Positions 6,592 to 60,972 of a DNA stretch of 64,000 nucleotides are shown piece by piece (position 1 is the stretch's first letter; each line of letters opens with the position of its first letter). Origin of the DNA: Mobula birostris (taxonomy: Eukaryota); assembly GCF_030028105.1 (NCBI RefSeq), contig NC_092383.1:86695921-86759920 (forward strand), in the 5' to 3' direction. The position numbers and the translations under genes were made by a program. The notes under the pieces are model-generated. The model saw only the letters and a list, made by a program, of their open reading frames with translations, was not told the origin of the DNA and did not search any database.

Positions 6592-6879
6592 GTGCGTTAT
6601 GGGCAGAGAGAGATATAAAAGGAGTTGTGGGAAGAGCGATCACAATCGATTGTCACTATGAAGCAAAGTACCGCTCACACACAAAGTATTGGTGCCGTTG
6701 GCAGAGAGTAGGATGTTTTCCTTTACATGGACGAGAGTCAATCACAGATAACCCAGCACAAGGAATATTTACTGTTACTATGAAGGACCTTGTGTCTGGA
6801 GATACAGCACAGTATGACTGTGGAGTTACAGAATCGGGTACTGATATAGTTTTTACCGTGAATCTACAAGTATATGATG
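6592..6879 (+). CDS. Gene A exon: CD300/pIgR-like Ig V domain (shortened)
   Basis: tttcag|GTGCG acceptor and G|gtatgt donor, phase 1-1, 288 nt. GALWAERDIKGVVGRAITIDCHY...KYWCRWQRVGC...DTAQYDC has the canonical Ig cysteines plus the WC-x6-C pair typical of CD300/pIgR/TREM V domains. Confidence 0.9.
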
Positions 6880-7189
6880 GTATGTTTCTCAAGTATTGAC
6901 GTTATGGCTTCACTGAAGTATCTGATACATGTATTTTTTGGTAATGGTCAGGAAAGTATTGATATCCTGAAGATCCACAGCAGTGTATAGTCCTATGAGG
7001 AACTGGGTTTCCCAACCCATGCTCACTCCTTGCATGACTCTATACTGCTGAGGAGTGGGCAAGGGTTGGGAAGTTGCACTCATGTTGCTTTCACCCGCCA
7101 TGGGGTCTGTCTCATTGACTGTTTCCAGTGGGATGATCTGGTGGTTTAATCACCTTGGAGCTAGAGGAAATTGCAAACTATGATGTGTT

Positions 7190-7740
7190 AGGCGAGGAGG
7201 CTGGTGAGTGGGAAGTTCAGGACTAGAGGAAATCTGTTTTTCTATCCACTGGAAGTGGATAGGCACAGTAATGCAGCAAACAGACAAGAAATCAACATTA
7301 TCCTTTGCAATTCCCACCAACTCCAATAAAATTCCACCACAAACCTGAACCCTGCTCATCACCTTTTTAGCATTTTGTACCAATCATATCCTTTGTGAGT
7401 TCCTTATCTGCTTTACTGCCCCAACCTAGCATTCAACTAAGAATGGCTATCTCCTGTGCAATTGCTGGAGATGGAACACCTTTCCTTCTCACTCCCATCA
7501 CTCAGGGACCTAAACAGCCTTTCCAGCTGATGAAAGGGATTCAACCACACTTCTGCCAACCCAGGCTACTTCTTTCAATGTTCGCAATGTGGCCTTCACA
7601 ACAGGAGGAGCCAAACACAGATTGGTTGATCACTTTGGAGCATCTGCCTTCGGTCCATGCGTGTGACCCTGAGCTTCTCGATACCTGTCATTTGAATTCA
7701 CACAAGCCTCCATTTACCTTGCCCTCTGTATGTGGTTTCC
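7190..7740 (+). mobile_element. Penelope-like element fragment (GIY-YIG region)
   Basis: ITQGPKQPFQ, GGAKHRLVDHF and CHLNS remnants match the PLE endonuclease region. Confidence 0.6.
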
Positions 7741-8679
7741 TGCTGATAGGAGATGAGCTGATTTTTCCACAAATTCATATTGGAGTTTGCTGTAACAACA
7801 CAGATGTTACAAAGAAAAGTCACATCTGGGAGGTATGAGAACTAAAGATTGAGTCAACCAGCTCAGGGTCAACACTGTGGATTTAGTAGGTACTCTTCAA
7901 TACAATCACTGGATCAACATTTGCTTTGTCTGGTTACAGAGGCATTGTGAAGACCAAGGCAGAGCATTAGATTGGAAGAAGAACAAGTGAATAGCAGCAA
8001 AGAGCTTATACAGTGATTCAGTGTTCACAATGTGTTCTTCTCTTCAGTAATCCTGAGCTTCCTGTTCCCTACCACTTTTATTCTTCGTCCCTCTCTGACC
8101 TACCTGCGTCCTTTGCACTGTCCCAGGACATTCCACAAGCTCAAGGATTAACACCCCATTTTCCGACTGTGCATGTTTCTGCCTTCTGGAATTAATACCA
8201 AACTCAAAATCTTCAGATAACATACTTTTTCTTATAGTGCATAAAATCCTTTGTCCCGGTCACCTGCTATTCTTTTGCTGTCTGGGTGTAGACTAGGCTG
8301 ATAAACATGCACTTTTGCCAGAACCACATCAGGGCCAGATGGGATAGACCCCAGGTTACTAGAGGAAAGGAGGAAGGAAATTACTGGGCATTGATCATGA
8401 TCTTTCCATTGTCACTGGCTAGAGGATTAGTACTAGGGAATTGTTCTTAAACCCATCAGCCCTACTGGGGCATAGGCCACGGACACCAGCTTACCAGAGT
8501 CCTCTGTCCTGATCCAGTCTTCAAGTTGTCCCCTGGTGTAGCCATCTTCTTGTTGTATCTTTCCTTTTCCTCTTCTTCATGTATCTTCCCTTTTCCAGGG
8601 ACGAGGCCTTTAAGTTCCTCTTGGCATTTCTGTAACTCTGGAACTTTATAGGATGGGATCGCTAGCCCTGATTTATTCC

Positions 8680-8878
8680 TAGTCTAATCATGGGATTATT
8701 TACAATGACCAATTAACCTGCCAGCTGGTATGGCTTCAGATGTCTGTAGGAGGAAACGGAAGCATTTGGAAGAAACCCACATGGTCACAGGGCGAACGTA
8801 CAAACTCCTTATAGGCAGCGGTGAGAATTGAACCTGGTTCACTGGCACTGTAAAATGTTGTGTAACCATTATGCTGTG
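8680..8878 (-). mobile_element. V-SINE (HE1-like) copy; further copies near 12540-12790 (-) and 21790-21900 (+)
   Basis: gtaaggagtttgtacgttc...gtgggtttcttcc...ccggtttcctcccaca-type V-domain sequence. Confidence 0.6.
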
Positions 8879-8929
8879 TCATCCTTTTTTCTATGTTCCA
8901 AGGAATATAAACCTAGATTGGCCAATCAG

Positions 8930-9880: not shown

Positions 9881-10116
9881 GGTTTTTAACATCCTCAGTG
9901 TTATCACTGCTGTCCTGTCCTAAAGTCCTGCTGTGTTCTGGGATATTGGCAGTCATGGCGGTTTAGGCGGCTGGGAGGATGCAGAGACACAGAGAGGTAT
10001 ATGAGCTGCTGAGATTCCAATCTGGTGGTTCATGGCTGTGATATAGAAGTACTGAAAATTGGAGAATGATTTTCAGATGTTCACTCAGTGTCTGAATGTT
10101 TGATCCTTTCCCACAG

Positions 10117-10434
10117 AACCGGTATCTGTTCCTGTGCTGTATCTGTCACCGCCAAATATCTCGTGTGTTGGACACTCAGTGTCAGTGTCCTGTGAGTCTC
10201 TCCAGGGATCTCTTCCCATTCAGTACACGTTCTATGAAAAGATCCCATCTGAGGATTCAAAGATCTCCAACACCAGTAAACTGGCTCTACATTGTCAATC
10301 CTTCAAACACCAGCACCATCAATATTACTGCACAGCCTCAAATAATCATGGAGCAAAATCCAGTGAAATGATCAACGTGAGAATCTTCAATAGAATGGGG
10401 AGTTGCAGTTATACGGTGGAAATCAATGGCACTG
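10117..10434 (+). CDS. Gene A exon: C2-type Ig domain
   Basis: cctttcccacag|AACC acceptor and G|gtgagt donor, phase 1-1, 318 nt. EPVSVPVLYLSPP...VSCESLQGSLPIQYTFY...YYCTASN; paralogous to the exons at 35184-35498 and 60652-60972. Confidence 0.9.
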
Positions 10435-10636: not shown

Positions 10637-11740
10637 ACTCACTGACTACTTTATTAAGTACACCTGTTACATCTGCTTGTAATGCAAATATCTAATCAGC
10701 CAATTATGTGACAGCAACTCAATGTATAAAAACATGCAGACAGGGTCAAGAGGTTCAGTTTTGGGGCATTGTGGGCTAAACTATTATTTAAAGATAATAG
10801 GAAAACATCCTACTGGATTATATGTCTGTGGTAGGCCAGAGACGGTTCAGCATGTTTTGCTGAGTTGTAATCGATACTTGTGGGTATCTTCGGGAGAAGA
10901 GAAGGCTAAAGAGTAAACCCTACACAAATCTGGAGTGGAGCCCCTAAGGCGGTCGGATGACGTATCAGAGGTCACTCCGGTAGGGCGCATCCATTGTCTG
11001 CTTAGACAGATGGAGCCATTATTATTATTATTATTAATCGAAATAGAATTGAAAGAAGCATATTGTTCAGGAGGCTGTCTTACTTAAATGCATTTTGTTT
11101 TTCTATTAAATCTTTGTTTGGCCACCAAGAGAACCACTGTCTGATTGAAGAGTTTATTATTCAGTTTATACGTGCGACTAATTTATATTCGAGAACTTGA
11201 GTTTCTTGAAATTCTATAATTAATCACACATCCTGTGGAGGGCAGTAATGCGTCTAGGTGCGTCTGAACTGCCGGAAGTAGAAGAAGAATAAAAAGAAGA
11301 AGAGGTTCAGTTGTTGTTCAGGCCAAACATCAGAATGGGGGAAGAAATGTGATCTAAGTGGCTTTGACCATGGAATGATTACTGGTGCCAGACAGGGTAG
11401 TTTGAGGATCTTAGAAACTGCTGATCTCCTGGAATTTTCATGCACAATGGTCCCTGGAGTTTACAGAGGATGGTGCAAAAAAACAATAAAAAATCCAGGT
11501 TAAAGCAGTTCTCTGGGCAAAAACACCCTGTTAATGAGTTAGGTCAGAGAAGAATGGCCAGACTGGTTCAAGCTGGCAGGATGGTCACAATAACTCAAAT
11601 AACCACGCTTTAAAATAGTGGTGTGCGAAAACCATCTACGAATGCGCCACACTTCGAATCTTGAAGTGGATGGTCTACAACAGCAGAAGACCATGAACAT
11701 ACACTCAGTACATGAGTGTATGGTACTTAATAAAGTGGGC
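10637..11740 (+). mobile_element. Tc1/mariner non-autonomous derivative interrupted by a Nimb-like 3' end
   Basis: actcactgactactttattaagtac...gtacttaataaagtgg TIR-like ends; HTH-region remnant (GKKCDLSGFDHGMI.GAR); same family as 33230, 53497 and 61010. Confidence 0.75.
10761..11299 (+). mobile_element. 5'-truncated Nimb/I-like LINE 3' end
   Basis: GHCGLNYYLKIIGKHPTG..ETVQHVLLSC; (gaa)n tail; 13-bp TSD AAGAGGTTCAGTT at 10748-10760 and 11300-11312. Confidence 0.75.
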
Positions 11741-11745
11741 TAGGT

Positions 11746-14306: not shown

Positions 14307-14358
14307 GACGTAATTATTCTTGTGAAACTATAGGAATACATTCCATTGCTTCCCTGAG
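14307..14358 (+). CDS. Gene A exon: short stalk (GRNYSCETIGIHSIASLR)
   Basis: Acceptor aaattttatttccttgcctcaacag closely matches the gene B stalk acceptor (gaattttatttccttgtctccacag). Shares the YxCE motif; AG|gtaaat donor; phase 1-2 joins the C2 and TM exons in frame. Confidence 0.85.
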
Positions 14359-15808: not shown

Positions 15809-15881
15809 ATACACAGTATGGAAGCTGGGGCGCTGGCTGCTCTTTATTCTGATGGTTATCTTCACTATTTCAATCAAATAG
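15809..15881 (+). CDS. Gene A exon: transmembrane segment with basic residues, ending in TAG (YTVWKLGRWLLFILMVIFTISIK*)
   Basis: Polypyrimidine tract plus ctcag acceptor; phase-2 start as in the gene B TM exon; hydrophobic run; TAG at 15879-15881; AAG|gtaggt donor 18 nt further on. Confidence 0.8.
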
Positions 15882-17154
15882 TTCAAGCAAGAAACTAAGG
15901 TAGGTTTGATGGACATCTGAAGATTGTGCCCAAATAGTTTCCATGAATGCTTTCAAATATACAGGTCACTGAAAGGCCAAAAATACTGTCTGTATGGAGT
16001 ACTTTACATCCTCTGACCAAACCAAACCTCTGTTCAAAGTCCAAGATTCAAGGTAAATTTCATTATCAAAGTACATATATGACACCCTGAGATTCATTTT
16101 CTTGTCATAATCAACAAGTCTATGGAAGAGTAACTATAAGAAGATTAATGAAAGATCAACCAGAGTGCAGAAGACAACAAACTGTGCAAATGCAAGAATA
16201 AATAAATGGCAATAAATAATGAGAACATGAATTCAAGAGTCCTTGAAAATGAGTCCGTTGGTTGTGGGAACATTTCAGTGGTGGGGCAAGTGAATCTGGT
16301 AGTGTGCTTGAACCTGGTGGTGTGAGTCCTGAGGTTCTATGCAGCTGCTTTCAGTAAGTTTTGACACATTGTGTGCAGAAGGGACTGGAGAGCTTGACAT
16401 CAAATCAAATCCAGTTTAATTATCATTTAAACCATGCATAGGCACAGCTGAACGAGACAGTGTTAATCTGGGGCTAAGGTGCAAAACGTTCAAAATAGCA
16501 AGCAAACTTGAAAATAGCGAGTAACATAATTCAATGTGAATATGGAGTCCTTGTGTCAGTGTGAGACAGAATTCTGTTGTGAGCAGCCATTTGGAATAAA
16601 CCAGATTCCCATTTTCAAAGTATTTGATGACTTCATCATTGTCTTCTGCAGAAATGCGATGACTGAAATTTGCACTGCTTATACCTTTGTGAAGAATCCT
16701 TGAAGCTGACAAATGTGATGGAATTCTGCTTCAAGATCAGATGTTTTCTCCTAGCTTTGAACAGCTCGTATTGACTGTTCTGTGTATATGCCTTACGTCA
16801 CTATACCAGTGACTTAATGAAACTGGAACCAAGCAAAACAAACTAATCATCCTTCAAAGTGACATTTTTGTTTCCATAATTCTATTTTTAAAACTTTCCC
16901 TTCTTTGTACTGAACATAGTTTGACCTTTCCCAATGCTTGAGAATCTTCAACTCTGTTAGATAGAGAGTTGTCAATTCAAATTTTAGCCGTAGATATTGC
17001 TTATTATACTAATCTGCAAATAATAATGAATTAAATGCTTCTTAATTCATTGCTGGTGTTAATGAGTGGTTATATGTTTTTTTCTCATCTGACTTAAGTC
17101 ATGGAGAACAGATTGCATTTTGGTTCCTGGATTTGTCTCAGTGTCAATGGTTAT

Positions 17155-23681: not shown

Positions 23682-23963
23682 CTAAGGAGCAATACTGGCA
23701 TAAATTGTCTTAGTAGAGTCCTCTGGCATGCTAGGAGACAGATGTTTTCTGCTGACCTTTGGGGGGTTGTTTATAAATTTAACATCTGTGTAGATGACAT
23801 TACTCTCTCCATTAACAGAGGGATCTGCTGTTGATTTCCTTTGAAATTCCATTGTTGCATCCATGGCCCCATTTTCTTCGTTAGCCATCTGGGCAGGAGC
23901 CTTGTCGCTTTGAATCTCCAGCACTGTCGCATAAGCATTTTGCTCTACAGATGTTGTTGTTTC
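23682..23963 (-). CDS. Gene B terminal exon: cytoplasmic tail with ITIM/ITSM motifs
   Basis: ttcattctttag|GAA acceptor, phase 0. ETTTSVEQNAYATV...VIYTDV...TIYASIAP*. Confidence 0.88.
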   Translation of the reverse strand, partial: ETTTSVEQNAYATVLEIQSDKAPAQMANEENGAMDATMEFQRKSTADPSVNGESNVIYTDVKFINNPPKVSRKHLSPSMPEDSTKTIYASIAP

Positions 23964-24715: not shown

Positions 24716-25517
24716 TGCTAAAGACCTCACAGGTTGAGCAGCATCTATGGTTGGGTGGGGGGGTGGGAGGAATTTTAGCATTTCAGATTGAAAACCAGTA
24801 TCAGAATTGGTTTTATATGTCTGTCTGGTGTTTGAACATAATTTATTCACTTGTGTTAAGCCTTGCTATTGTTTTCCCCATGTGCTTACACACTTTCCTT
24901 TACGATACCTGATTCACTTCACTTACCTCCAGCAGTGACTAACTCTGGAATGTCATCATGATCAGTCTACGTATATAGGCTAATCTAATGTAATTATATT
25001 TATTGTGTTTTTTTTAAAGTTTAGTTCTTTATGGTTATTGTGTTTTTTATGTTACATCATATCCGGAATACCATCATTTTGTTCTCCTTTACACCTCTCT
25101 ACTGAAGAATGACAATAAACAAAGTGAACCTTGAATAATCTGCAAATGGAATTTAATCTAGAATTCTTGATGGGGTGGGTCCATTATTAATTGCCTTATA
25201 CATATAGCTTTACATTTGCTCTCCCCTTCTAGTGGAAACATCTTCACCTCACTGTAAATAGTCTGACAACCTTGTAACAACTTCTATCAAGTCACCACTG
25301 CCCCTGCCCCAACTCTGCTTTGCTTTTCATTTTTTTTATTAAGCTTCATCTCCTTAAATGTGACTATAAAACTCTAATTTTCTAGCGTGAATGATAACAG
25401 CTAATGATTCTAAATCAACACTGGCTATATGTAAACGTACAAGAACCACAGTAAGTTCAATACAAGTAAAACTATTCTAAATACTTCACGGTGGCATCAT
25501 TAGAGAGATACTTTCGA

Positions 25518-25735
25518 GAGATACTTTATTGTCGCCAAACAACTGACACTAGAACGTACAATCATCACAGTGATATTTGATTCTGCACTTCCAACTCCCT
25601 GGATTACAAATCGATAGTAAATATTAAACATTTAAATTATAAATCATAAATAGAAAATAGAAAAATGGAAAGTAAGGCAGTGCAAAAAAACCGAGAGGCA
25701 GGTCCGGATATTTGGAGGGCACGGTTCAGATAAAA
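25518..25735 (-). repeat. Young 5'-truncated retroposon 3' end; near-identical copy at about 30833-31070
   Basis: atactttattgtcgccaaac...gagaggcaggtcc present twice with high identity. Confidence 0.75.
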
Positions 25736-26663
25736 GACTGAAACTGAATGTGGATGGCATCAGAGCAAGGCACAAAGTCTTTGTTGTTTGCAGTCAACAA
25801 CATTTAATGGAGCAGTTTAGAGTTGCAAGTATTCAGGGAGTGGATCCCAGAGCTGAGAACCAGGACAACTGATGCCAAAGTGACAAGCAGTGAGATTAAG
25901 CAAGTGCAGATGGACCAGAGGGAAGATCTAGGACAGATCAGCAACCTGTGGAAATGTGGAGAGACAGTGGATGTAAGTGAGAAGATTTTGAACCCTATTG
26001 ACCATTTATTCCAAGTGGCCAAAGATCTTATCAACTGCAGTGTCCAGTTAAAAATTCATCAGGTAGTCAGACAGAACAAGCATTCAGCATATTGTAGAAA
26101 ATATCATTAACAAAGATGGCTGATAATTGATCCAAGAATCGGCAATATGTTTGGAGTGATGTTGTCAGCATTGAAAGGTACAGTGAGAAAGCGGGTAGCT
26201 GAGGGCAGCTTATGACCACAGAAAAGGAGAGCTTTTTATTCACTTGCAGACAACAAATTTTACAATATATGTCAATAATATTAAACCTGATGCTGATTCT
26301 GGGTGTTAGAGTGAACTTTCTTTATATTTCTGATTTTGCTTCAGTGGGGAAATATGAAATGTCGACTGAATAATCGCTGAACACAAATATAGAATTAGAA
26401 AAGTTCCCATTTTTAACAGTAAAGCCAGAGCCAGACTCACCTTGTGCCCATCAGTAAAAATATTAAAGAATGTGGCCACTCTGAGGATGAGCTCAGTAAA
26501 ATACTATGGTTCTTTTTAAGGAAATGCTGGATAATACTGAAGAGAGAATGAACAGAAGGATATGCTAAAGAAGAGTGATGTGAGGAGATTTGTGTATGGT
26601 ATGGGGTGAATGGCCTGATTTGTTTGCTGTAAATTTTAAAACATTCACAGTTCAAGCCCTTAC

Positions 26664-26710
26664 CTGGGTTTCATTCTTGCGTGTTCTGTGAAACATCTTG
26701 AACTTGGTTT
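26664..26710 (-). CDS. Gene B exon: membrane-proximal cytoplasmic segment (ETKFKMFHRTRKNETQ)
   Basis: ttttccag acceptor and CAG|gtaag donor, 47 nt. Phase 1-0 exactly bridges the TM and terminal exons. Confidence 0.78.
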
Positions 26711-27375
26711 CTGGAAAATACAATATCACCTTTGAAAATTCCTGTCAGTAACAGGGTTAATTGTCCATGTGTTGCGTGCAAAACCTTGGTTCCACTACAG
26801 GCATGAATCGCCACATAGAGCCAGAATATGCTTTGGCCACTGCACACAACATCAGAACAAACAGAATCATTTTCTATAAGTGCTCAACTCAATAATGAAC
26901 CTCAAAGACGTGTGCTCTTCCCATTATTCCCATCAGGGAGGAAGTACAGAAGCCTGAAGCCAGATTCTCAGTGATTCAGGAACAGCTTGTTCCCTTTCAT
27001 AATCAGATATCTGAACAATCCATGAACCTATAAACATTACTTTATTCCTTTTTAGCTCTTTTTACTTATCTTTGTAATTTACAGCATACGGATGAGATCA
27101 TGTTAACAGAAAATGCCGGAAGTACTGCTTCTGCCTGGGGAAAGAGAAGCAGTGAGCAGTCCAGCTCCTGAGAACTTCATCAGAATAACTGCCTGACCTA
27201 CCATTTCCCGTATTTATTTCTGCTTCAGATTTCAACCCCAGCAGGTTTTTGATTTTCAGTCAAGTATGTCCTTAACGCTATTACTTTTTATTAAGAACCA
27301 AACAAAATCTCTCAATGCAGTGCAGCAAATTCTCACAAAATATCATGAAAATACTTTAAAAAGTTCAAAACTCAC

Positions 27376-27467
27376 CCTTGAGTTTAGAGTTTAGGCACCA
27401 AATTAGGCAAATGAGAAAAACCATGGCAAGAACTCCAGTGACACTGAGCACGACTATGGGAATGAGT
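27376..27467 (-). CDS. Gene B exon: uncharged transmembrane segment (LIPIVVLSVTGVLAMVFLICLIWCLNSKLK)
   Basis: tgtttgtaccacag acceptor and G|gtgag donor, 92 nt, phase 2-1; about 23 hydrophobic residues. Confidence 0.88.
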
Positions 27468-28900: not shown

Positions 28901-28924
28901 GTCAAATCTATGAAATGTTTTGAT

Positions 28925-29732: not shown

Positions 29733-29820
29733 CTTTGTCTATCATTGTCTCTTATTTCTGGATTTGTAGAAGGAGTTGTTACTGATTCAGTTCCAGAACT
29801 TTCACAAGTATATCCAGACC
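29733..29820 (-). CDS. Gene B exon: Ser/Thr-rich stalk (GSGYTCESSGTESVTTPSTNPEIRDNDRQR)
   Basis: ttccttgtctccacag acceptor and AG|gtaaac donor, 88 nt, phase 1-2. Confidence 0.85.
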
Positions 29821-35183: not shown

Positions 35184-35498
35184 CAGTGATGGTAGTATTT
35201 GAAGTATCTGTACATTTTTCTATAATGTTGGAGGCTGTCACATCCAATATCTCACTGTTTTTTTTCCCACAATAATTTGAGGCAGTGCAGTAATACTGTT
35301 GGTGTTTGAAGGATTGACAATGTAGATCCAATGTATTGGTGTTTGAGATCATTGTATCCTCATACAGGGCCTTTTCATACCACGCGTACTGAATGGGAAG
35401 CGATCCTTGAACAGACTCACAGGACACTGACAGTGAGTTCTGAAAACCTGAAGCATTTGCTGATGGCAGAAATCTAAGCACAGGTCCAGACACACATT
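35184..35498 (-). CDS. Gene B exon: C2-type Ig domain
   Basis: cctttcccacag acceptor and G|gtaagc donor, 315 nt, phase 1-1. ECVSGPVLRF...VSCESVQGSLPIQYAWY...YYCTASN. Confidence 0.9.
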
Positions 35499-38659: not shown

Positions 38660-38980
38660 CAACAAGTACATGCAGATGTACATTTAATAACAGACCGAGA
38701 CCTGGTGTTGTAATTCCACAGCTGTACCATCCTGTATCTCCAGAGTGAAGATCCTCCATAGTAACAGTAAATATTCTCCGTTCCGGGTTATCTGTGATTG
38801 ACAATCGTCCACGCCGTCTGTGTTGCCCATTTGTTTCCACTAAAACTGAACATTGGCGAGTCCATCCATGGCACCAATACTTTGTGTGTGAGCGGTACTT
38901 TGCCTCATAGTAACAATCGATTGTAATCGCTCTTCCCACAACTCCTCTTACATATTCATCTGCCCACAATGCACCTGAAA
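38660..38980 (-). CDS. Gene B exon: second CD300/pIgR-like V domain (V2)
   Basis: cctcag|TTTCAG|GTGCA tandem acceptors (alternative start 38974) and G|gtaagt donor. VSGALWADEYVRGVVGRAITIDCYY...WCHGWTRQC...DTGWYSC. Confidence 0.88.
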
Positions 38981-39072
38981 CTGAGGGAGGTATTTTCAGA
39001 TTTGATGGAAAGGAAGAATTTAATGCAAATAAATAACATTGAAAGCACAAGGTTAACCACTAAGAAACCTAC

Positions 39073-39393
39073 TATCAATTACTTGTAGATGAACATAAAA
39101 TCTCGGATTGGGACTTCTTTCTGTAATTCCACAGCTGTACCACCCTGTATCTCGAGAGTGAAGATTCTCCATAGTAACAGTAAATATTCCCTGTTCCGGG
39201 TTATCTGTGATTGACACTCGTCCACTCCGTCCACATTGCCCATTTGTTTCCACTAAAACTGAACATTGGCGAGTCCATCCATGACACCAATACTTTGTGT
39301 GTGAGCGGTACTTTGCTTCATAGTGACAATCAATTGTGATCGCTCTTCCCACAACTCCTGTTACATATTCATCTGCCCACAATGCACCTGAAA
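39073..39393 (-). CDS. Gene B exon: first CD300/pIgR-like V domain (V1)
   Basis: ccttag|TTTCAG|GTGCA tandem acceptors (alternative start 39387) and A|gtaggt donor; open frame with the same cysteine pattern. Confidence 0.88.
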
Positions 39394-42300
39394 CTAAGGA
39401 GGAAGTACTTCAGAAAATTAAGGTGTAAAATCAATTTAGCCAACAAGGCATCTGAAATTGAACAGAAGAATATTCAGATTCCGTGGGAAAGGAATTGCTT
39501 CATATGCTGATGTACATTTTGCAAATAATTACTGCCTGCCCATTATTGATTTAAAAGGAATTCCGTCAGATTTATGATTAAAGATGATTGTAAAAAATCA
39601 TCAGATATTAATCATTAGCTTCTTGCACTGGTTGTGTTCCTGCTCCTCACCTTCCTCATTGTCTCAATCGTCACCCTCCCTGCCATCCACCCGGATCCAT
39701 CTACCTTTTGTTTTCATCTGGGTGCTTCCAGCTATCACCCACCCAGCTCTATCTCCAAACATCACCGCTCCCCTAACCCTATAAGGGTTCCATCTGCCTG
39801 TTATCCTACAGCCCTCTTCGGTCCACTAATGAGCTACTGGCTCCTGTTTCGCCACTCCCCCTCTCCTTTTGATACAGACTATCTTTCCTCTCCACCCTCA
39901 GTCCTAAGATAGGGAATCAAGCCAAAACATCGACAATATCTTTCTCACCCATCTCCCCCCACCCACAGATGCAGCTTGACTCACTGAGTTCCTCCAGCGT
40001 CTGCAGTTGTGTCTCAATAAGAATATCCCTCTTGATCATGTCCTGAGGAGGTGTCTCATGACTTCACAGCCAATGACTTTGGTCTGAAGTACTGCCGGTG
40101 CTGTTGCTATGTCAGTGTTCCCTCCAGTACATTGTGGGGTCACTCCTGCTTCACCATGGGTAACTTCGCTCACCTCAACACTGAACTGATTCCACAATCT
40201 ACTGACTCACTTTCAAGGACTCTACATCTCATTTTCTGAATGTTATTTATCTACCTATCATCTTTTGTAGCCTGGGGAAAAATACACACGCAGGACCACA
40301 AATATTTTTAGGGGTCATTAAGTCCTTTATCTGTTTTAGGTATTTTAATACAGAAAGAGGGTATCAAAATAACATCACAATACACATTAATGAAAAACAC
40401 AGTTCCTGCTGTGACAATCTCAGCTTAATTTCGGTTCATACCCTTGTTTTGTCTACAGTATGAAAATAAATAAAATAAAATATACAGACCAATATGGTAG
40501 TGGCAATTCTATAAAACCATACAAACAATATTAGACTCCCGCCAACCCTGTACCTTATACACAACATCAAAAATATGAATAAATACATCTCATGTTAATT
40601 AAGGGATATACTCACTTTGGCACACACGTGCTTAACTTCCAAACACATATAGGCAAGTTATAGACAAGTTATCCTCGCTCATGCTACGTGAACAGAGATT
40701 AACACATTCACATTACTAGGTTATGTTCACATTTGCTCATGAAACAATAAAGTAAGCCAAAAAAAGACTTTTACAATATAATGCCTTGTAGATAAATTAC
40801 CAGAAAGACTAACCTACTAGGCCAATAAGGAACTTTATGCAACCACACTATCCAACGCTGACATCTTACTCACAGAAATATGAAGCATCCACATGCAAAA
40901 CATGTCAAATTACCGATATTCTAGATTTACAAACAAGTATAAACAAATTTACATGGATATTATCAAATATTATTCATCGTATGACTAGCCTTCAACATTC
41001 TTTCTAGAACCTTCAACTCTTCTTTCTACTCCACACATGCATAATGACATCACTGTTTTCTTTTAAAGGCACAGACAGCTATTTTAGCATTACCAGGGTG
41101 AATACGTAAATGCACTTTAACAATAAATAATGATATTCGATGGTCAGCTGGTTACATTTCTATTTATTTTTGTATTTGCACATTGGTTATTTGTCAGTCT
41201 CTTGTTAGTGTGTAGTTTTACATTGATTCTATTATACTTTTTCTGCTGTGAATGCCCACAAGAAAATTGATTTTTCAGTTGACAACTGGGTGTGAAGATC
41301 AATGGACTCCCTTGATACTCACAGAACCATCGACCATCCATTCTCACCTCACTTGCTCCTTAAATTGTTAACAAGCTGGGTTCTGAATGGTGAGAGTTTG
41401 AAAACTGAGAGAAACTGGTATTGCATGAGGTCTGTAGACTATTTTTGGACTTGTTGTGGTGTTGGTGAAATAGAATAAATGGAGAATATGTCTATAAAGA
41501 TGTATAAAGATGGCTTCCTCCACCTGTACTTGAAAGCTCGATTTCAGCATATAAGAGAAGTTTGGTTAGGGACATGGATAGTAGGGGGATGGAGGGCTAT
41601 GGCATTGGTACCGGTTGATGGAAATGAGCAGTTTAAATGGGTTGGTATGGACTAGATAGGTTAAGGGGCCTGTTTCTGTACTGTACTTTTCTGTGACTCT
41701 ATCACTCTAGATCTGACTATCTATCCTATCTCTGCCTCTCATAATTTTCTAAACTTTCATCAGTCTCTGTCTCCAATCCAACTTTGAACAACTTCTCCTT
41801 ATAGCACATAATCTCTAATCCAGACAGAATCATGTTAAACCCCTTCTGTTCTCTTTCCAAAGCTTCCACATCCTTCATATGATGGGGTCACAACGCTACA
41901 CACATTAATCCATGTGTGGCCTAACTAAAGTTTTATAAGGCTGCAATATGACTTTCTAACTTTCTACTGAATGACTTGCTGATGAAGGCTATATGCCTTC
42001 TGTACCACCTCGTTTAATTGTATGGGAGCTATGAATTCATTATCATCATCATTATGTGCCATATTGTATGATGTAGACAATCATAGTCTCATGGCCATGA
42101 CTGTTTTGGCAAATTTTTCTACAGGAGTGGTTTGTCATTGCCTTCTTCTGGGCAGTGTCTTTACAAGACAGAAGACCTCAGCCATTATCAATACCCTTCA
42201 GAGATTGTCTGTCTGGCGTCAGTGGTCGCATAACCTGGACTTATGACATACACCAGCTGCTCATATGACCATCCACCACCTGCTCCCATGGCATCATGTT

Positions 42301-44729: not shown

Positions 44730-44766
44730 CCGGCAGGAAGCAAATGAGAAGAATTAGAATCCACAT
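44730..44766 (-). CDS. Gene B leader exon (MWILILLICFLP)
   Basis: aaaataATG; hydrophobic signal peptide; G|gtgagt phase-1 donor; paralog at 52911. Confidence 0.88.
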
Positions 44767-44915: not shown

Positions 44916-45539
44916 ACTTGAAACCTGAAACCCTCTCAATTTTCTCTCACAAATTATTCTGAACTGATTGACATTGGCAGGTGGAAATAGTGAAAACCAG
45001 CAAGTTAAAATATTAGCAGTGTTATTAATGAGTTAATGACTGAAACATCATGATGAATTGCAAGAAAAGCAGGAAAAAAAGAAAACAAAATCACAAAATT
45101 GTTGAGATTGATTGGAAAATTACATCCCCCGTCTCCCTGGAAGAGGTATCGCACCAGCATCATCTGAAGACAATTAGAAATGGGCAACGACTGCTGATTT
45201 TATCCCACATTTGTACCACTCACCTGACATATACTTACTTAGATAAAAAATTTACTTTGATTAATAGGATATCCATCCCTGGCTGTCACTCATCAGGAAG
45301 AGAAAACATGGGAAGAATCAGACTCCATATTACTTTATCGGCAGGGTCCAGGCCAACATACTTAGTCTGTCACCTGGCTGATAGGGCTGTCAGAAGTGCA
45401 TGCTGAAATGTAAATGAAGAAGAAGGACGCAGGAAATCCAGTACTAAAATCACACTGAGCCAGCTGACAAAGTCTAATAGGCTAATTAACCACTAAAAAT
45501 TCTCCTAGGAGAATAATACACATTTATGAGGGTTATAGT

Positions 45540-45865: not shown

Positions 45866-47004
45866 AACTGTATTTCTCCCATCATTGCTAGAAATGCTCA
45901 CTCTAGGTATCATTGTACCTCAGTTCTTTCTGGACCCTCCCTGAACTTGGACACACACAGTATCGAGAACACATATCATTATTCTATTCATTAGGAGTTG
46001 GTAGGCTAAAAGCATGGGACTGCAGAGTGTTCATTCTAGTGTCGAGATAATAGGAATTTGACCATTTTGTAGTCAATGTATTGGTTACTGAATCTAAAGG
46101 GAGAGAGCGGAGGTATTTGCAACTTATCAAAGCCTCAGGCATTTCAGTGAGGCATCAGAAAGGGTAGTTGACACATAAACATTATGCCAGCAAGAAAAAG
46201 TAACAGGCTGGGCATTCTGTGGTAAATGATTCTCATCTTAGCTATATTGTGGTTCCCACATTTTCCACAACTACACACCTGCACATATTCCAGTAAGATG
46301 GCAATGTGCTCGGACGCGGTGGTTCCAATCAAAGGTGTATTTGTTCATCTTTTACATCCTTTTTTACAAATGCAGATCACTGCTGGATACTAAGAACATC
46401 AAGTACTGCAGGACTGTCCCATCAGCCAGTTGCTTGATAGGGATGGAGCTGGACATATTACATACCGTCGTGCTGTCACCTAGACTTTTTGGGGACTGTT
46501 GTTGCGCTGAGGCGGTCCGTGGTGTGAGTGATTAGCTTGGACTTTATATTGTGATTGAAAGATCCTATTGGACTTTGGTAAAGTAGAATAGTGCAAGTCG
46601 GGTTCACTGGTTTATTGGTGAGACCGAGGGCAGGTGAGCTGCATGGCCTTGGTTGTGGTGAGGACTAGGCCTGCACAGTGAGGTCGCCTGCTGTAATTAC
46701 CCAGTGGAGGAGGGACCACAGGCAGTGTGAGGGAGTGCAGAAACCTCTATTGGCGCATTGGAATCTGTAGCGGGTTGAAGGCTGACCCCCCCCAGTTGGT
46801 GCTGTTCTCTAATGTCCGCTCTGTGGAAGAAGCTGGACCAGGACAATTTATCAATCTACAGTCATACCACTCAGGGACCAAACCGTTGTTTTTTCCCTTT
46901 CTAATGGTATGTTTTTCTGCAATTGTAACCAAATGTGCTATTTGTGCCAAGTGCCAAGTGAATTGAATTGAATTGGATTGGCTTTATTACTTACATCCTT
47001 CATA

Positions 47005-47415: not shown

Positions 47416-47454
47416 TTTACATGAGGAGTAAAAATCTTTAAGTTGCGTCTCCAT

Positions 47455-48600: not shown

Positions 48601-49029
48601 ATTGGTAATGTATTTGGCACCTTGACCTCGGAAGAACACTGGTTCATTTGTATTCATGTACAGTTGAATCATTATTAAACTTGAACCTGATATTTAATCA
48701 TCGCCTTTGAGGAAATCTTTCACTAGTTCTGAACTATGACTAACCATGAGAATGTTCAGTTCTGGGTGTCACTCACCAGGCAGGAAAGAGGTAGGGTTAT
48801 TAGAACATTCAGGAAAAGAAAACAGCTCTTAATTCTTGGAGCAAAGGGATTATTCAATAGAGATGTTGATAGAATATTTGTGGGGAAGAAGGCAACAGGA
48901 AGTACACTGGTGAAATCACGGTGTGCCTGACATTTGAAAATCTGTAAGAATATTTAACAAATAAAAAGAAAACAATTATTATAAAAAGTAAAAAGAAGAA
49001 GAAACATTTTAAGGTCTGGGTGATTACGG

Positions 49030-52910: not shown

Positions 52911-52947
52911 ATGTGGATTTCAGTTCTGCTGATTAGTTTCCTACCTG
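52911..52947 (+). CDS. Gene C leader exon (MWISVLLISFLP)
   Basis: aaaacgATG; G|gtgagt phase-1 donor; homologous to the gene B leader, including flanks. Confidence 0.88.
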
Positions 52948-54569: not shown

Positions 54570-57500
54570 ATCAATGTCCCCTCATGGAATTTGAAATCAC
54601 ATCTGGATTCCCTGATGCAAAATTGGTCCGACCACTGTTGTAAAATACTCGAACTCAGGAAGCGCATATCAGAACAGGCCATCAAAATAGATTTTTTAAA
54701 ATGTGGAAGGGCCTTCAATCTCATGCCACTTGTCAAAATAAAACAAAGGGAGTGTCTATTTTTTATTAAATCTAATATTTTATTTATCTAAGAAGACATT
54801 GTGTCAGATACTAATGATAGATATTTAATTGTCAAAGGAACAATTTGTAATAGAAAATTTGTCCTGGTTAATCTGTATGGATCTAATGTAGATGATCCTT
54901 CTTTTTTTAAAAAATGTATTTGGTTTATTGCCAGATTTAAATGAATATATGTTATTAATGAGTGGTGATTTTAACTGTTGTTTAAATCCTTTGATTGACA
55001 AGAGTTCAACCAATCAACAGCTTCGAAGTTGTTCGGCATCACTTATTAACTCTTCTTTAATCGATTATGGTTTGATCAAAATCTGGAGACATCTACATCC
55101 TAATGACAGAGATTATTCCTTTTATTCACATGTTCACAAAAAAATTCGAGAATCGATTATTTTATAGTTGATTTCCAATTTTTGTCCAAAGTCTAGAAAT
55201 ATGAATATGTCGCTATCGTCGTTTCGGATCATGCGCCTTTAAGCTTAGCTTTTGAATTGAATGATGTCAGTATTGTAAACTTGCCTTGGTGTTTTCCAGA
55301 AAATTTATTACAAAGTTCGGACTTTGTCAAATTTATTGAGACTCAGAAAAGACTTTTTACCTTTTTAACAATATGGGAGATGTGTCGAAATTGATTATAT
55401 GGGATACATTTAAAGCATATTTGCGAGGTCAGATAATCCCCTATTTAGCTAAGGTTAAGAAACTAGAGTTACTAGACTCTAGAGAAACTAGACAAAAACA
55501 GAGTTAGATAAGATTTCAAAACAAATTAAAGACTTGGATAATATTTTTGCAATCTCTCCTAACATTGATTTATTTAAACAAATGGTTGAACTTCAATCAC
55601 AATATAATTTACTATTAACTTATCCTATTGAAAGAAATCTGCTTAAATTGAAAAGTTAATTTTATGTGTTTGGAGGTAAAAATTATAAGCTATTAGCAGC
55701 CCAATTAAAGGCAGCTAGAGCTAAAAGACAAATTTTAAAAATTCATAAGGGAGACAGTAGTTTAGCTTGTAATTATGAAGACATTAATAAAATTTTTCAA
55801 GACTATTACATTGAACTTTATAAATCTCAGTTTCCAGCTGATCCTTCTAAAATGAATGCCCTTTTACAAAAGATTGATTTTCCTAGAATATCTGTTGAAG
55901 ATCAACAAACTCTTGATACTCCTATTACTGAAAAAGAAATTCAGAAAGCTATTCTTTCAATACAATCTGGTAAAGCTCCTGGATTGGATGTTTTTTCTGT
56001 AGGATTTTATAAAAAAATTGAAAAATTGCTTTCTCCATATATGTCAGAAAAGATTAAAGATTCTTTTTTGTTAGGAGAGTTACCTCCCATATTTTATGAA
56101 GCTTCTACTTCTTTAATTTAAAGGAAGATAAAGACCCTACTGACTGCGCTACATATAGACCCATTTCATTATTAAATGTGGATGCTAAAATTCTTTCGAA
56201 AATAATAGCTTATCGACTGGAGAATATTCTAGCTAAAATTATCTCTCAGGACCAAACAAGTTTTGTAAAGAGCCGTTATTCCTTCTCTAATACTCAGAGA
56301 CTGTTAAATGTTATATCCTCATCCTTTTCTAAGACTCCCCAATGTGTTGTTTCTCTTGATGCTGGAAAGGCATTTGATAGAGTTGAATGGAAATACTTAT
56401 TTAACGTTTTAGAGAAATTCAACTTTGGTACTCATTTTAATAAGTGGATTAGAGTGATATATAAAAGCCCTATTGCTACTGTTATTACTAACAATTGCAG
56501 ATCTCCTTTTATTCGACCTTCGCAGGGTACGAGACAAAAATGTACGCTAAGTCCCCTGTTATTTAATTTGGTGTTGGAACCCTTGGCCATTGCACTTCGT
56601 GAATCTAAAGATATCCATAGAATTTCCTTTCTTTCTTTTTAAATCTTTTTATTAATTTTTCAAAATTACAAACTCAATAACAAAGTTGGTACAAAGAGAT
56701 TGGAAAAATATTCATCAACGTATATAAAATGAATTTTAAGTAACATAGATATAAAAGACTTCCAAACTCATAATGAGATTAAACATTAAAAAAGAAATAA
56801 AAAGAAAAAAATATATAAACAAAAAAAACCTCAAAAGAAAAAAAGAAAGAAAACCCCCAAGAAGAAAAAAAAACAAAACAGGGCTAGACCAACAGCTTAT
56901 ATCGGATATGTTCAATAATGTCGTTAACTCCGCTCCTCTCATCATATAATTTAAATTTAGAAAAAAGTTTAAATTTAGAAAAAAGAGAATTTCCATAAAT
57001 GGGACTATTCATAAGATAACCCTTTATGCAGATGATCTCTTAGTTTATGTTCCAAATCCTGAAGAATGCATTCCTAGTTTATTGAAATTATTAAATGAAT
57101 TTGGAAAGTTTTGGGATGTAAACTAAACCTTCATAAAAGTGAATTATTTCTTCTAAATGATTTTGCTTCTATATATGATGACATTCCTTTTAAAGTTATG
57201 GACTCTTTTAAATATTTAGGTCTTATTATCAGTAAAAATTACAGAGACTTTTATGGAGCTAATTTGGTTCCTTTAGTGGACTTTATGAAGCAATTATTTT
57301 GTAGATGGAATCCACTTACACTTTTGTTAACTGGCCAAATTTGGTACCAGTTTCGTAATTTATTTAATCTCAGAAAATTTAACCTTCTTAGTTTAATTTA
57401 TCAAAATTAATTATTTAAACCTTCACTAAGTGATCCTACCTTTTTTCTTTGGAGGAATAAGGGAGTCTATCCCTTCATGGATCTGTTCCAAGAAGGCCGA

Positions 57501-58620
57501 TTGATGTCTTTTGAGAAATTAGTAACTAAACACTCTCTCTCGTTCTCACATTTATTGCAATATCTTCAGGTCAGACATTTCTTACAAGAATATTTAAGTA
57601 GTTTTCCATATATACAGGATTCTGACCTGTTAGACATTATTTTAAAAGTGAATCCTTTAGTGAAACGTTTTATTGGGAAAACTTATTATTTACTATTACA
57701 ACAGTACAATTATCCTTCACCTAAGATTAAGCAAGATTAGGAAAGAGGGCTTAACATGACCTTGATAACAGAGGATTGGTTGCGAATTTTGAAGTTGGTT
57801 AAGTCTTCTTCGATTTGTGCCAGTCACCCTTTAATTCAATTTAAAATTGTACATCGTTACTATTTGAGGAAGGAGAGACTGTATAAAATATTTCCTAATG
57901 TTGATAGTCAGTGTGATAGATGTAAAACTGAGAGAGCCATATTGACACATATGTTTTCGTTGTGTTCTATATTGAAACAGTTTTGGAAATCTATTTTCTC
58001 TACAATTTCTAAAGCTTTAAAAAATAATTTAAAATCTAATAAACTGACAGTTTTGTTCGGTATAATCCTTCAATATATTCATTGTACTTCAATATCAGAC
58101 TAACATGTAATTGCATTTGTTACATTATTGGCCAGAAGGGCTATTTTATTGAAGTGGAAAGATGCCCCTGCTCCCACTTTGATACAATGGTTCTCTCAGG
58201 TGATGCTATGTCTTAGTTTGGAGAAAATCAGAAGTCAAATTTTGATCCTCGATTTGACTTTGAGAAAAGGTGGAGTTCTTTTGCCCGCTACTATCATCTG
58301 ATTTGAGTTAATTTAGATGGTTTCCTTCTGATTCTTGTTTAAATGGATTTGAATTGGCGGATTGATGTTTTTCTTTTATGGAAGCTTGTATGGCGTATAG
58401 CTCTGGGGTCGTGCTCCCAATGGGGATTTTTTTGGGGTTTTTTTGTTTTAGTTAGTAGGGGTTCTTTTTCCCTTCTTTCTTTTTTCCAAAAACAAAATAG
58501 TTTTAACACTTTATTTTTTCTTCTTATTATTGATATATTGTTTAGCTTTGCTAATCAGTTATTTGTTAATTTAATTCCTCATTTTACATATTGACATGCT
58601 GACTTGATTACTTTAATGTA
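54570..58620 (+). mobile_element. L1-clade LINE: near-complete but decayed ORF2 (APE+RT+CCHC) and 3' UTR
   Basis: SGDFNC, DYSFYS, GKAPG.D, YRPISLLNVDAKI, SLDAGKAFDRVEW, LYADD and CDRCK...THMF motifs; many stops and frameshifts. Confidence 0.92.
56628..56985 (-). mobile_element. Inverted L1 3' end nested in the L1 RT
   Basis: Poly(T) left end; 9-bp TSD AGAATTTCC at 56619-56627 and 56986-56994. Confidence 0.8.
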
Positions 58621-59124
58621 TTTTTTTTGTTAATCTTCAATAATAATTATTCAAAAGATTTTAAAATGAAAATATTCAAACAACTCATTGAAGGATACTT
58701 GGCAGGAACAAAATATGGACTGAATTTGGAACAGATTCCAAGGCAACTGGACCATCCCTGTAGAAGGAGCATGTGGTATCCATGCGTAAAATCAGGGATT
58801 TCTGTGACCGCTGGCACCACAGGGACTGCAGAGTGTTCTGGATGTGAAATATTGCAGTATTGTATTAAACCTCTGTAGGCGTGGGAGAACTCAGGACTTT
58901 ACACAGTACCTACTTGTCCTTCGACCCAGCCTCACAGATTCTCCAAGTCTGAGACTGACGAACAGTCCTTTCTCCTGTGACCTCTCAGGCAGTGGTCACA
59001 GTAATTGTCTGTAGGCAGGTCTAGCCCTCCCCTCCCAGTATTTGCAGTGGCATGAAAGTTCGCCTGCCCGCCTGAGACAATCCCAAATAAAATACACTAG
59101 AGAGGCATAATACCTGCAGGAAAA

Positions 59125-59600
59125 ATATCAATAAGATTGTAAGGGAGCAGAGAAAGTTTCCGAGGATTTTGCCTAGACTTGAGGACCTGAGTTATAGGGA
59201 AAGGTTGAATGGGTTAGGATTTTATTACCTAGAGTGTAGAAGAATGAGGGAAGATTTGATTAAGGTATACAAAATTATGAGGGATATAGATAAGGTGAAG
59301 GCAAGCAGGTTTTTCCCACTAAGGTTGGGTGAGACCAGAACTAGAGGTAAAGGGTGAAAGGTGAAGTGTCAGGAACTTGAGGGGGAACTTCTTCACTGCT
59401 GGTCAGAGAGTGGAGCAAGCTGCCAGAGCAAGTGGCGGATGCATGTTCGATTTCAACATTCAAAATTAGTTTGGATAAGTACGTGGATGAGCTCTGATCC
59501 AGGTGCAGGTTAATGGGATTAGGCAGAATAATAGTTTGGCATGGACTAAACTGATCTAAGGGTCTGTTTCTGTGCTGTAGTGCCCTATGACTCTGTGACT
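59125..59600 (+). mobile_element. CR1 3' portion
   Basis: LEDLSYRERL..LG..LECRRMREDLIKVYKIM. Confidence 0.85.
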
Positions 59601-59879
59601 ATGGTCTGGGTTGATTGAAAGTTAGCATCCACTGCACTGCCACACTCCTTACCAGAACGTTAGCTGGGAGTTCCACTTGGGTCTCTGGAGTAGAAAGTGA
59701 CCCTAGAATGTACTGCAGCCAGCATAGTCACAGCACTGACAGCACCAAAATCATTAACTGTGAGGTCATCAGACATATCCTAGGACATGACCTGCAGTCC
59801 TTTTTGAAATTACTTTCTAAGTATATTTGTTTGTATTAAATAGCTTCTTTTACCTCACATCTGAGACTATCCCCTTCAG

Positions 59880-60200
59880 TTTCAGGTGCATTTTGGGCAG
59901 AGAAATATATAAGAGGAGTTGTGGGAAGAACAGTCACAATCGATTGTCACTATGAAGCAATGTACCTCTTTCACACAAAATTTTGGTGCATTGGATTCAA
60001 CCACCCATGTTCAACCGTAGTGGAAACACATGGGCACCCAGAACGGAGTGAAAGAGTGTCAATCACAGATAACCGGATACTAGGAGTGTTTACTGTTACT
60101 ATGGAGGATCTTCACCCTGGAGATACAGGATGGTACAGTTGTGGAATTACAACATCTGGCAACAATCCACTGTTTGGAGTATATCTACTGGTATCTGACG
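59880..60200 (+). CDS. Gene C exon: CD300/pIgR-like V domain
   Basis: ttcag|TTTCAG|GTGCA tandem acceptors (alternative start 59886) and G|gtcagt donor. GAFWAEKYIRGVVGRTVTIDCHY...FWCIGFNHPC...DTGWYSC. Confidence 0.88.
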
Positions 60201-60651
60201 GTCAGTTTGTTAGTGATTGCCCTTGTGTCTTCATTAAATAAATGTTTGATCCGTGTTTCCTCTGGAAAGAGTCAGAACAAACGATGACTGGGGAAGATAA
60301 TGCACAGGTGTCCCTGCCAATTGGGGAGATGTTGCTCTCATGGCTGAGGGTCATCATCATATTAATAAAGACAATCTTCTCCTCCTCCTCCTCCTCTTCC
60401 TCCTATTTCTGCTCCTCCTCCTCGCCAACACAAGAGTACAAGATCTTTTTTCAGTCCTTGTCCATCCCTTGCTGCCTCCATGTTAATATCAGTGCCAAGT
60501 GTTTTCCTTCCTGCTACAGGTCTCCAAACACAGTCATAATTACATTTGCTGTACAAGAGCCATCAACATATTCAAGACATCTGAGAAATTGATGCTTTTT
60601 TAAGTTTTCAGATGCTCATCCAGTGTCTAAATATTTGATTCTTTCCCACAG

Positions 60652-60972
60652 AACCCGTGTCTGTTCCAGTGCTTGGATTTCTGTCGCCAGCAAATGTTTC
60701 ACGTCTCGGGGGCTCAGTGACAGTGTCCTGTGAGTCTGTGCAGGGATCCCTTCCCATTCAGTACACATGGTATGAAAACAATTCATCTGGGCATTCAAAG
60801 ATCTCAGATACTAATAAACTGGATCTACATTGTCAATCCTTCAAACATCAACGTCATCAATATTACTGCACAGCCTCAAATTGGCATGGAGCAAAATCCA
60901 GTGAAATGGTCAACGTGACCATCTTCAACAATGGAGAGAACTGCAGTTATGTGACAGAAATCAATGGCACTA
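60652..60972 (+). CDS. Gene C exon: C2-type Ig domain
   Basis: ctttcccacag acceptor and A|gtaagt donor, 321 nt, phase 1-1. EPVSVPVLGFLSPANVS...YYCTASN...CSYVTEINGT. Confidence 0.9.

Follow-up and report, generated by a model that had tools for sequence, protein, structure and literature searches.

Exon-level layout of a probable MDIR immune-receptor cluster in the giant manta ray, Mobula birostris

To which receptor family do three neighbouring manta ray genes belong that combine V-type and C2-type immunoglobulin (Ig) exons, and what kinds of signal could they give? The genes, designated A (+ strand), B (- strand) and C (+ strand), lie within 64,000 nucleotides of contig NC_092383.1 of Mobula birostris (positions 86,695,921 to 86,759,920; 'the window', which contains no N runs). 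They are read here, with a probability of roughly 85%, as part of a multigene cluster of MDIRs (modular domain immune-type receptors) on a M. birostris chromosome, with phase-1 cassette exons and two alternative signalling ends. This reading starts from what was observed directly, namely the exon structure, the family membership, the motifs, splicing at the 3′ end of gene B, and RefSeq models for gene B (5′ part) and gene C. MDIRs are cartilaginous-fish receptors that were reportedly described in 2006 from skate cDNAs, and little follow-up was found in the open literature.

A tblastn comparison of exon translations with the whole window recovered exactly four V-type exons (at 6.6, 38.7-39.0, 39.1-39.4 and 59.9-60.2 kb) and three C2-type exons (at 10.1-10.4, 35.2-35.5 and 60.7-61.0 kb). 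In Pfam the V exons are V-set domains (E down to 3e-13) and the C2 exons are assigned to Ig_3/Ig_2/Ig_C17orf99; a protein-atlas feature search returned generic Ig clusters only. In the rebuilt exon chains, the splice sites of every exon of the three genes are canonical, an AG acceptor preceded by a pyrimidine tract on one side and a GT donor on the other. The phases are also consistent, with the leader ending in phase 1, the Ig exons 1-1, the linker 1-2 and the transmembrane (TM) exon 2-1 (2-0 in gene A). This exon set is real, far beyond chance. The strands of the exons place genes A and B tail-to-tail and genes B and C head-to-head.

The host, the giant manta ray, was recognised from RefSeq proteins of M. 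birostris that match exons of genes B and C at 100%. XP_072133754.1 (287 residues, 'polymeric immunoglobulin receptor-like') corresponds to the leader, V1, V2 and linker exons of gene B, and XP_072134922 to XP_072134925 (isoforms X1-X4, named 'pIgR-like', 'FCRL2' and 'FCRL5') correspond to the leader, V and C2 exons of gene C. Moreover, a scan of protein representatives with the gene C C2 exon gave 786 matches, of which the close ones (55-76% identity) are all chondrichthyan. An earlier account of this DNA, made without database searches (the sequence-only reading), had proposed a probable cartilaginous fish and three paralogous genes with CD300-type V and C2 exons, conserved phases, the gene orientations given above and shared intron flanks, and each of these points was confirmed. 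The flank in question is a ~220-nt intron stretch just before the C2 exon, which is 78% identical between gene A (9894-10116, +) and gene B (35499-35716, -); either of these shares only ~50 nt with gene C.

In one respect the V exon boundaries require correction. Two acceptors 6 nt apart precede the V exons (..YAG/TTTCAG/GTGC.., at 39394-39399, 38981-38986 and 59874-59885, with the gene A counterpart at 6584-6591), and the V exons normally start at the upstream AG (TTTCAG...), which is 6 nt earlier than first proposed. The two residues VS, gained or lost through acceptor choice, are exactly what separates RefSeq isoforms of neighbouring genes (NGSVSGALW versus NGSGALW).

The family to which the genes belong was identified by BLASTP. 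Three proteins of the clearnose skate (Raja/Rostroraja eglanteria) were recovered, MDIR2 (ABC86796.1), MDIR3 (ABC86797.1) and MDIR5 (ABC86800.1), to which genes A, B and C are 46-64% identical over 220-410 residues (E 1e-77 to 1e-127). Gene A is 59% identical to MDIR5 over 250 residues (E 1.5e-96), gene B shares 62% identity with MDIR3 over 315 residues (E 4e-127) and 46% with MDIR2 over 408 residues, reaching into the tail, and gene C is 64% identical to MDIR5 over 226 residues. The comparison with skate MDIRs that the sequence-only reading had proposed was thus positive. A Callorhinchus protein deposited as MDIR2 belongs to the same family set, and relatives are found in sharks, rays, skates and Callorhinchus. 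On these alignments genes A, B and C are true MDIR family members, combining similarity to the skate proteins with a modular ectodomain, members with a charged TM and members with immunoreceptor tyrosine-based inhibitory motifs (ITIMs), and a cartilaginous host.

The affinities of the single modules were judged by E-values against the PDB rather than by a tree with CD300, pIgR and TREM outgroups. The best single-domain match of the V domain is CD300f/CLM-1 (E 1.7e-19), ahead of pIgR D1 (E 1.9e-13), which bears out the CD300/pIgR-like V type claimed earlier; NKp44, TREM2 and FAIM3/FCMR (E 3e-4) follow. All four V exons read ...IDC...KYWC-x6-C...Y-x-CG, with the canonical and a second C-C′ cysteine pair. 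The C2 domain matches FCRL5 (E 7e-35 over six domains), then FCRL4 and CD22 (d6-d7). It could be argued from the FCRL5 match, from the strong pIgR match when the V domain is summed over several repeated domains (E 3e-52), and from NCBI names such as 'polymeric immunoglobulin receptor-like' and 'Fc receptor-like protein 2/5', that these genes are simply the cartilaginous-fish orthologs of pIgR or FCRL. We regard this as very improbable. pIgR has V-type domains only and FCRL has C2-type domains only, and the mixture of V and C2 in genes A-C fits neither architecture. pIgR itself would further be expected as a single copy with a sorting-signal tail, whereas here C2 modules, ITIM or arginine-TM (Arg-TM) ends and many paralogs per species were found; FCRL would be expected to have a C2-only ectodomain, whereas each gene here begins with CD300-type V exons. 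The names are a poor guide, as the same proteins bear five or more different and misleading automatic ones (pIgR-like, FCRL2/5/6, CMRF35-like, CXADR-like and A33-like). Orthology with pIgR or FCRL was rejected on architecture, and a single conserved non-immune gene of the Ig superfamily was likewise rejected, because the genes are members of an extensive multigene family in which both ITIM and Arg-TM ends occur.

The genes can also be compared with better known systems. Skate MDIRs are built from these two Ig module types as well, again in varying number. The arrangement is V-C2 in MDIR2 and V-V-C2-V-C2 in MDIR3, each followed by an ITIM tail, whereas in MDIR5 it is V-C2-V-C2, followed by a W-K-V-G-R-W TM as found here. 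Unlike the skate proteins, which are known from cDNAs, the manta window displays the exon-level genomic layout, and it has features of its own in the tandem V1/V2 exons with a 92-nt intron, the tail-less gene A and the head-to-head genes B and C with homologous leaders. Mammalian CD300 (CMRF35-like) receptors share the V type with its extra cysteine pair after the C strand, a likeness at the level of the V domain, and they too form a clustered multigene family with ITIM and charged-TM forms. However, in CD300 one V domain is followed by a stalk and there is no C2, whereas all three manta genes carry FCRL-type C2 exons, and the charged TM residue is Lys or Glu in CD300 but Arg, within a family-specific motif, in the manta genes. 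pIgR, FCAMR and FCMR have a related V type and, like the manta genes, tandem V domains; they differ in being single-copy, in having no C2 modules and in having no ITIM/Arg-TM alternatives, and a transport function is not implied for the manta genes. FCRL and CD22 resemble them in the C2 type (closest to FCRL5, FCRL4 and CD22 d6-d7), in ITIM/ITAM-type signalling (ITAM, immunoreceptor tyrosine-based activation motif) and in modular domain numbers, but FCRL is without a CD300-type V domain. Lineage-specific clusters of V-containing activating and inhibitory receptors are also described in teleosts, as pIgR-like/CD300-like clusters, NILT, DICP, NITR and zebrafish 'MDIR' (PMC3031540; 10.1101/2022.04.21.489081). 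These express the same concept in another lineage with other module sets.

Two types of signalling end recur throughout the family. In a set of 123 proteins from 23 chondrichthyan species, an Arg-TM motif, [WYF]-x-[VMIL]-[GIV]-R-W, with a short tail is present in 39, while 42 have a neutral TM and one to five ITIM-like motifs or motifs resembling the immunoreceptor tyrosine-based switch motif (ITSM). The Arg-TM motif is conserved in catsharks, epaulette sharks, skates, stingrays and mantas alike, and ITIM tails likewise extend from shark to ray. In the window, genes A and C are of the Arg-TM type and gene B is of the ITIM type. Domain extraction with hidden Markov models gave more than 30 V/C2 arrangements among the 123 relatives, and the common ones, V-C2 and V-C2-V-C2, occur with either signalling end. 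When signalling type was mapped on a FastTree phylogeny of 186 V domains, 32 changes were required, compared with 37-42 for shuffled labels; the C2 tree required 26, and the poor resolution of these 106-column trees inflates all such counts. The near-random distribution on the V tree makes module exchange plausible, and an almost complete lack of linkage between ectodomain modules and signalling ends would fit frequent exchange.

If this reading is correct, each gene would consist of phase-1 cassettes open to duplication, skipping and exchange: a leader, one or more V exons with the extra Cys-x6-Cys, C2, and a cysteine-containing linker. Spliced paralog contigs joining V to V and V to C2 were seen, and these support cassette modularity. 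Together with the tandem acceptors 6 nt apart, the cassettes would give isoform diversity. The tip of the V domain would bind ligand, and one of two ends would carry the signal. In the first, a TM with W-x-V-G/I-R-W is followed by a short tail, and the arginine would activate the cell by pairing with an ITAM-bearing adaptor such as those of the FcR-gamma/DAP12 class; an arginine in the outer third of the TM is typical of FcR-gamma-coupled receptors. In the second, a neutral TM is followed by an ITIM/ITSM tail that would recruit SHP/SHIP phosphatases and inhibit the cell. Gene A would be an activating-type V-C2 gene in which a nonsense change has removed the tail, with further signs of decay; gene B would be an inhibitory V-V-C2 receptor in which phosphorylated VIYTDV and TIYASI would recruit SHP or SHIP; and gene C would provide the 5′ half of an activating V-C2-V-C2 receptor, whose TM arginine, placed close to the helix's outer third, would pair with an acidic residue of an ITAM adaptor.

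Gene B is the most fully documented of the three. Its rebuilt chain of leader, V, V, C2, linker, neutral TM and tail forms an uninterrupted frame of 500 residues from the leader onwards; the exons are listed in the direction of transcription.

46274..46348 (-): first exon of the RefSeq model, upstream of the leader and probably 5′ untranslated region (UTR) (tblastn, 96% over 25 residues)
44730..44766 (-): leader exon, MWILILLICFLP (part of the RefSeq match)
39073..39393 (-): V1 exon (100% to XP_072133754.1; separated from V2 by a 92-nt intron)
38660..38980 (-): V2 exon (tblastn, RefSeq match)
35184..35498 (-): C2 exon, intact but divergent (end branch 0.6), skipped by the RefSeq model
29733..29820 (-): linker exon, GSGYTCESSGTESVTTPSTNPEIRDNDRQ- (part of XP_072133754.1)
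27376..27467 (-): TM exon, LIPIVVLSVTGVLAMVFLICLIWCLNSKLK, a membrane span without a charged residue (record 8 of the X1 contigs ends exactly at 27376)
26664..26710 (-): 47-nt juxtamembrane exon, -ETKFKMFHRTRKNETQ (RNA joint to 23963, GT..AG)
23682..23963 (-): last exon, cytoplasmic tail and stop codon (mismatch-free RNA: X6 record 25, X5 record 17, X1 record 1)

The tail carries NAYATV, VIYTDV (an ITIM consensus) and TIYASI (ITSM-like). A fourth motif that reads G-I-M-Y-A-A-V in relatives reads GAMDATM in gene B, so that the tyrosine is replaced by aspartate and lost. The neutral TM and three tyrosine motifs of the sequence-only reading, themselves read from the DNA, were therefore retained, but its single V exon was replaced by two. 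About 0.5 kb upstream of the leader lies a degenerate second leader copy (45279-45344, -; 74% over 66 nt, no ATG), and a weaker leader-like copy is present at 48751-48787.

Splicing at the 3′ end of gene B is seen in Logan contigs. An 822-nt contig of run X6 joins 26664 to 23963 with 0 mismatches across a 2.7-kb GT..AG intron and runs on into the 3′ UTR. A 173-nt contig of run X1, also with 0 mismatches, ends exactly at the last base of the TM exon (27376); in the same run the joint between the 47-nt exon and the last exon is again GT..AG, and a contig alignment stops exactly at 26710. The sum 63 + 47 + 63 = 173 is consistent with joined TM, 47-nt and last exons. In addition, one mismatch-free contig spans 172 nt of intron directly upstream of the 47-nt exon (26711-26882, -) and then splices to the last exon; this could represent a retained intron, pre-mRNA or an alternative start.

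A number of points weigh against the interpretation of the region as a cluster with two signalling ends. All RNA evidence comes from Logan contigs of coded runs, and X1 is flagged as possibly DNA. Of the junctions that had been predicted, those at the 3′ end of gene B were seen spliced, but among the Logan contigs no transcript links the V exons of gene B to its TM and tail exons, the linker-to-TM junction was not seen, and no contig is identical to the C2 exon. Contigs over the V and C2 exons are mostly 90-95% alike, and even the best carry fixed differences from the window, so that they may derive from paralogs or alleles. Transcripts with V-V and V-C2 junctions do exist in the family, and use of gene B's own 5′ exons is not thereby demonstrated. 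The RefSeq model of gene B moreover skips C2 and stops after the linker, by read-through of the linker donor (CAA AGg taa, 29731-29735, -); it would predict a secreted V-V-linker form with no C2, TM or tail. With respect to gene A, no leader was found in window positions 1-6592 by a hydrophobic-ORF (open reading frame) scan, by blastn with the gene B and gene C leaders or by regular expression, and the share of its C2 words present is 0.00 in each of three RNA runs from the same species. Statements on cell type, ligand and adaptor and on the recruitment of phosphatases are inferred. The sequence-only reading is weaker in that A and B, judged by identity, are not an ectodomain-matched pair in the strict sense (typically >80%), that gene A may be decaying, that gene C is an activating-type V-C2-V-C2 gene with only its 5′ part inside the window, and that the locus is already auto-annotated in RefSeq under misleading pIgR-like and FCRL-like names. 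The earlier suggestion that the genomic organisation may be undescribed accordingly needs qualifying: what is added here is the exon-level layout.

The relation between genes A and B bears on how such a cluster would work. The sequence-only reading took them to be an ectodomain-matched activating/inhibitory pair. The members of such a pair would share a ligand but signal in opposite directions, in the manner of KIR2DL/2DS, SIRP-alpha/beta or CD300a/c. The two genes are indeed adjacent, tail-to-tail and of opposite signalling type, and a 77-nt tract of the V alignment (columns 34-110) is 96% identical between A and B V1 and 95% identical between A and B V2, compared with 70% elsewhere. Applied to polymorphic sites, a run test gave p of about 0.01, uncorrected for six comparisons. 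Gene conversion at this tract is plausible from the alignment; however, no motif of the family is better conserved than the one encoded here (GVVGRAITIDCHYEAKYRSHTKYWC), and constraint can explain much of the identity, so that conversion is not shown. By tblastn, protein identity between A and B is only 55-60% in V and C2 alike, on which account the ectodomains do not qualify as matched, and B and C stand at 58-61%. The C2 of gene A is closest to that of gene C (72% of residues, 82% of nucleotides), and gene A has one V with a deletion where gene B has two. Furthermore, the manta does have a well-matched pair outside the window, XP_072134917.1 (P0181, ITIM) and XP_072134926.1 (P0201, Arg-TM), which are 86.5% identical over a 489-residue ectodomain. 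A strictly matched A/B pair is for these reasons unlikely, and that claim was dropped. Of the broader proposal, a paired-receptor locus evolving by exchange, the adjacency of both signalling types and the plausibility of exchange survive; strict pairing within the window does not.

By the Nei-Gojobori method, the ratio of non-synonymous to synonymous change (dN/dS) is 0.7-0.9 when V exons are compared with one another and 0.36-0.53 for C2 exons. Between V1 and V2 of gene B the first 88 codons give a ratio of 0.5 and the last 18, at the FG end, one of 2.6, where the numbers are small (15.5 non-synonymous versus 2.5 synonymous differences). This pattern fits a ligand-facing, fast-evolving V tip.

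Gene A has four exons in the window.

6592..6879 (+): V exon, CD300/pIgR-type (tblastn, Pfam; long branch of 0.53 in the V tree)
10117..10434 (+): C2 exon, FCRL-type (94% identical to M. hypostoma XP_062921371.1)
14307..14358 (+): 52-nt linker exon, GRNYSCETIGIHSIASL-, phases 1-2 (rebuilt chain)
15809..15899 (+): TM exon encoding YTVWKLGRWLLFILMVIFTISIK, then TAG at 15879-15881 (donor at 15900 intact)

The TM contains the conserved arginine motif of the family (W-x-V/L-G-R-W). In an alignment with 40 relatives the TAG falls exactly on the conserved tryptophan of ...TISV-x-W-FTRETK, and beyond the stop the exon still ends ...KQETK before an intact donor. The basic-residue TM with no tail that had been proposed for gene A is hence real, and is explained by an in-exon stop. 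The nearest match is XP_062921371.1 of M. hypostoma ('Fc receptor-like protein 2', 169 residues), whose identity to gene A reaches 94% in C2 and 96% in the TM and whose sequence stops at the same residue; as judged from this comparison, the TGG-to-TAG change predates the split of the two Mobula species. The linker of gene A is 39 nt, or 13 residues (TTAESMTTAGSTG), shorter than that of the M. hypostoma ortholog, in frame.

These features raise the possibility that gene A is a decaying gene or pseudogene and not a working activating receptor. The nonsense change at a family-conserved tryptophan takes off the last three TM residues and the entire tail. The V exon has a long branch and a 27-nt deletion in the C′-C″ region, and its upstream acceptor, the primary one, is lost (CAA instead of CAG/TAG), so that only the short form is possible. 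The missing leader-like exon in the 6.6 kb upstream of V and the lack of gene A words in same-species RNA, both noted above, point the same way, as does the fact that no M. birostris protein model of gene A was found among proteins of 93-296 residues; the M. hypostoma model is itself without a V domain and has an odd, distant first exon. Against decay, the frames of all four exons are open and their splice sites canonical, and M. hypostoma has retained the stop, with C2 and TM 94-96% identical at the protein level. The ortholog C2 exon is represented in related-organism RNA runs at 0.19-0.39 of words, which fits an expressed ortholog ~3% diverged. The leader may also sit just before the window start, since leader-to-V introns measure 5.3 kb in gene B and 6.9 kb in gene C, and an Arg-TM receptor could pair with an adaptor even without its tail. 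On balance decay of gene A is a serious possibility that falls somewhat short of even odds.

Gene C was traced to its first C2 exon.

52911..52947 (+): leader exon, MWISVLLISFLP (RefSeq match; homologous to the gene B leader, including ~100 nt upstream)
59880..60200 (+): first V exon (100% to XP_072134922-24)
60652..60972 (+): first C2 exon (RefSeq match; the gene extends past the window)

In RefSeq the part outside the window consists of V-C2-linker-TM (FMIWKVGRWVLFALLMISTISVMWFTRETK) and a short tail, and isoforms skip either V exon singly. The V and C2 exons given for gene C by the sequence-only reading were thus correctly placed, but the gene is incomplete within the window, its RefSeq continuation making it V-C2-V-C2-TM(Arg).

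A further reading concerns what the receptors recognise. With a V domain of pIgR/FCAMR/FCMR type and a C2 of FCRL type, MDIRs might be cartilaginous-fish Fc or polymeric-Ig receptors for immunoglobulin (IgM/IgW/IgNAR), an idea that we consider rather improbable. If it were true, the W-x-V-G/I-R-W motif kept from shark to ray would be a dedicated adaptor-docking site, and natural variants with a decoy or regulatory role would be represented by gene A, tail-less in two Mobula species, and by gene B in its read-through V-V form. For the reading of the region as an MDIR cluster, the family is already known, and the value of the present analysis lies in the exon-level description, which will not surprise a specialist. 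Chromosome-level ray and shark genomes carry dozens of MDIR genes, and an exon map gives them correct names and provides clear candidates for ligand and adaptor work. It displays V/C2 cassettes, 6-nt tandem acceptors and interchangeable signalling ends that would generate receptor diversity in the oldest jawed vertebrates.

The introns and intergenic regions contain several repeat-like elements. A segment just downstream of the C2 exon in genes A (10649-10760 and 11305-11687) and C (61049-61199) recurs in an intron of gene B (33244-33736), in opposite orientation relative to the gene, and the gene A copy is split by a ~540-nt insertion; this segment is probably a repeat element or a small inversion. 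RNA contigs lie thousands deep, with many mismatches, over 25450-25850, 26850-27049, 28650-29450 and 37670-38290, and these stretches are highly repeated transcribed elements within the introns of gene B. Loose ends near 37802 resemble the head of a tRNA-derived short interspersed element (GGTTCGAATCC-like), at which ARAGORN found no tRNA. Between genes B and C, an AT-rich (30-34% GC) stretch at 54900-58100 resembles a long interspersed element and contains reverse-transcriptase fragments (Pfam RVT_1, E 1.5e-19). A further reverse-transcriptase fragment follows the C2 exon of gene C (63029-63787, E 7e-16), and additional reverse-transcriptase-like ORFs are located at 18.5-20.1 kb and 47.1-47.5 kb.

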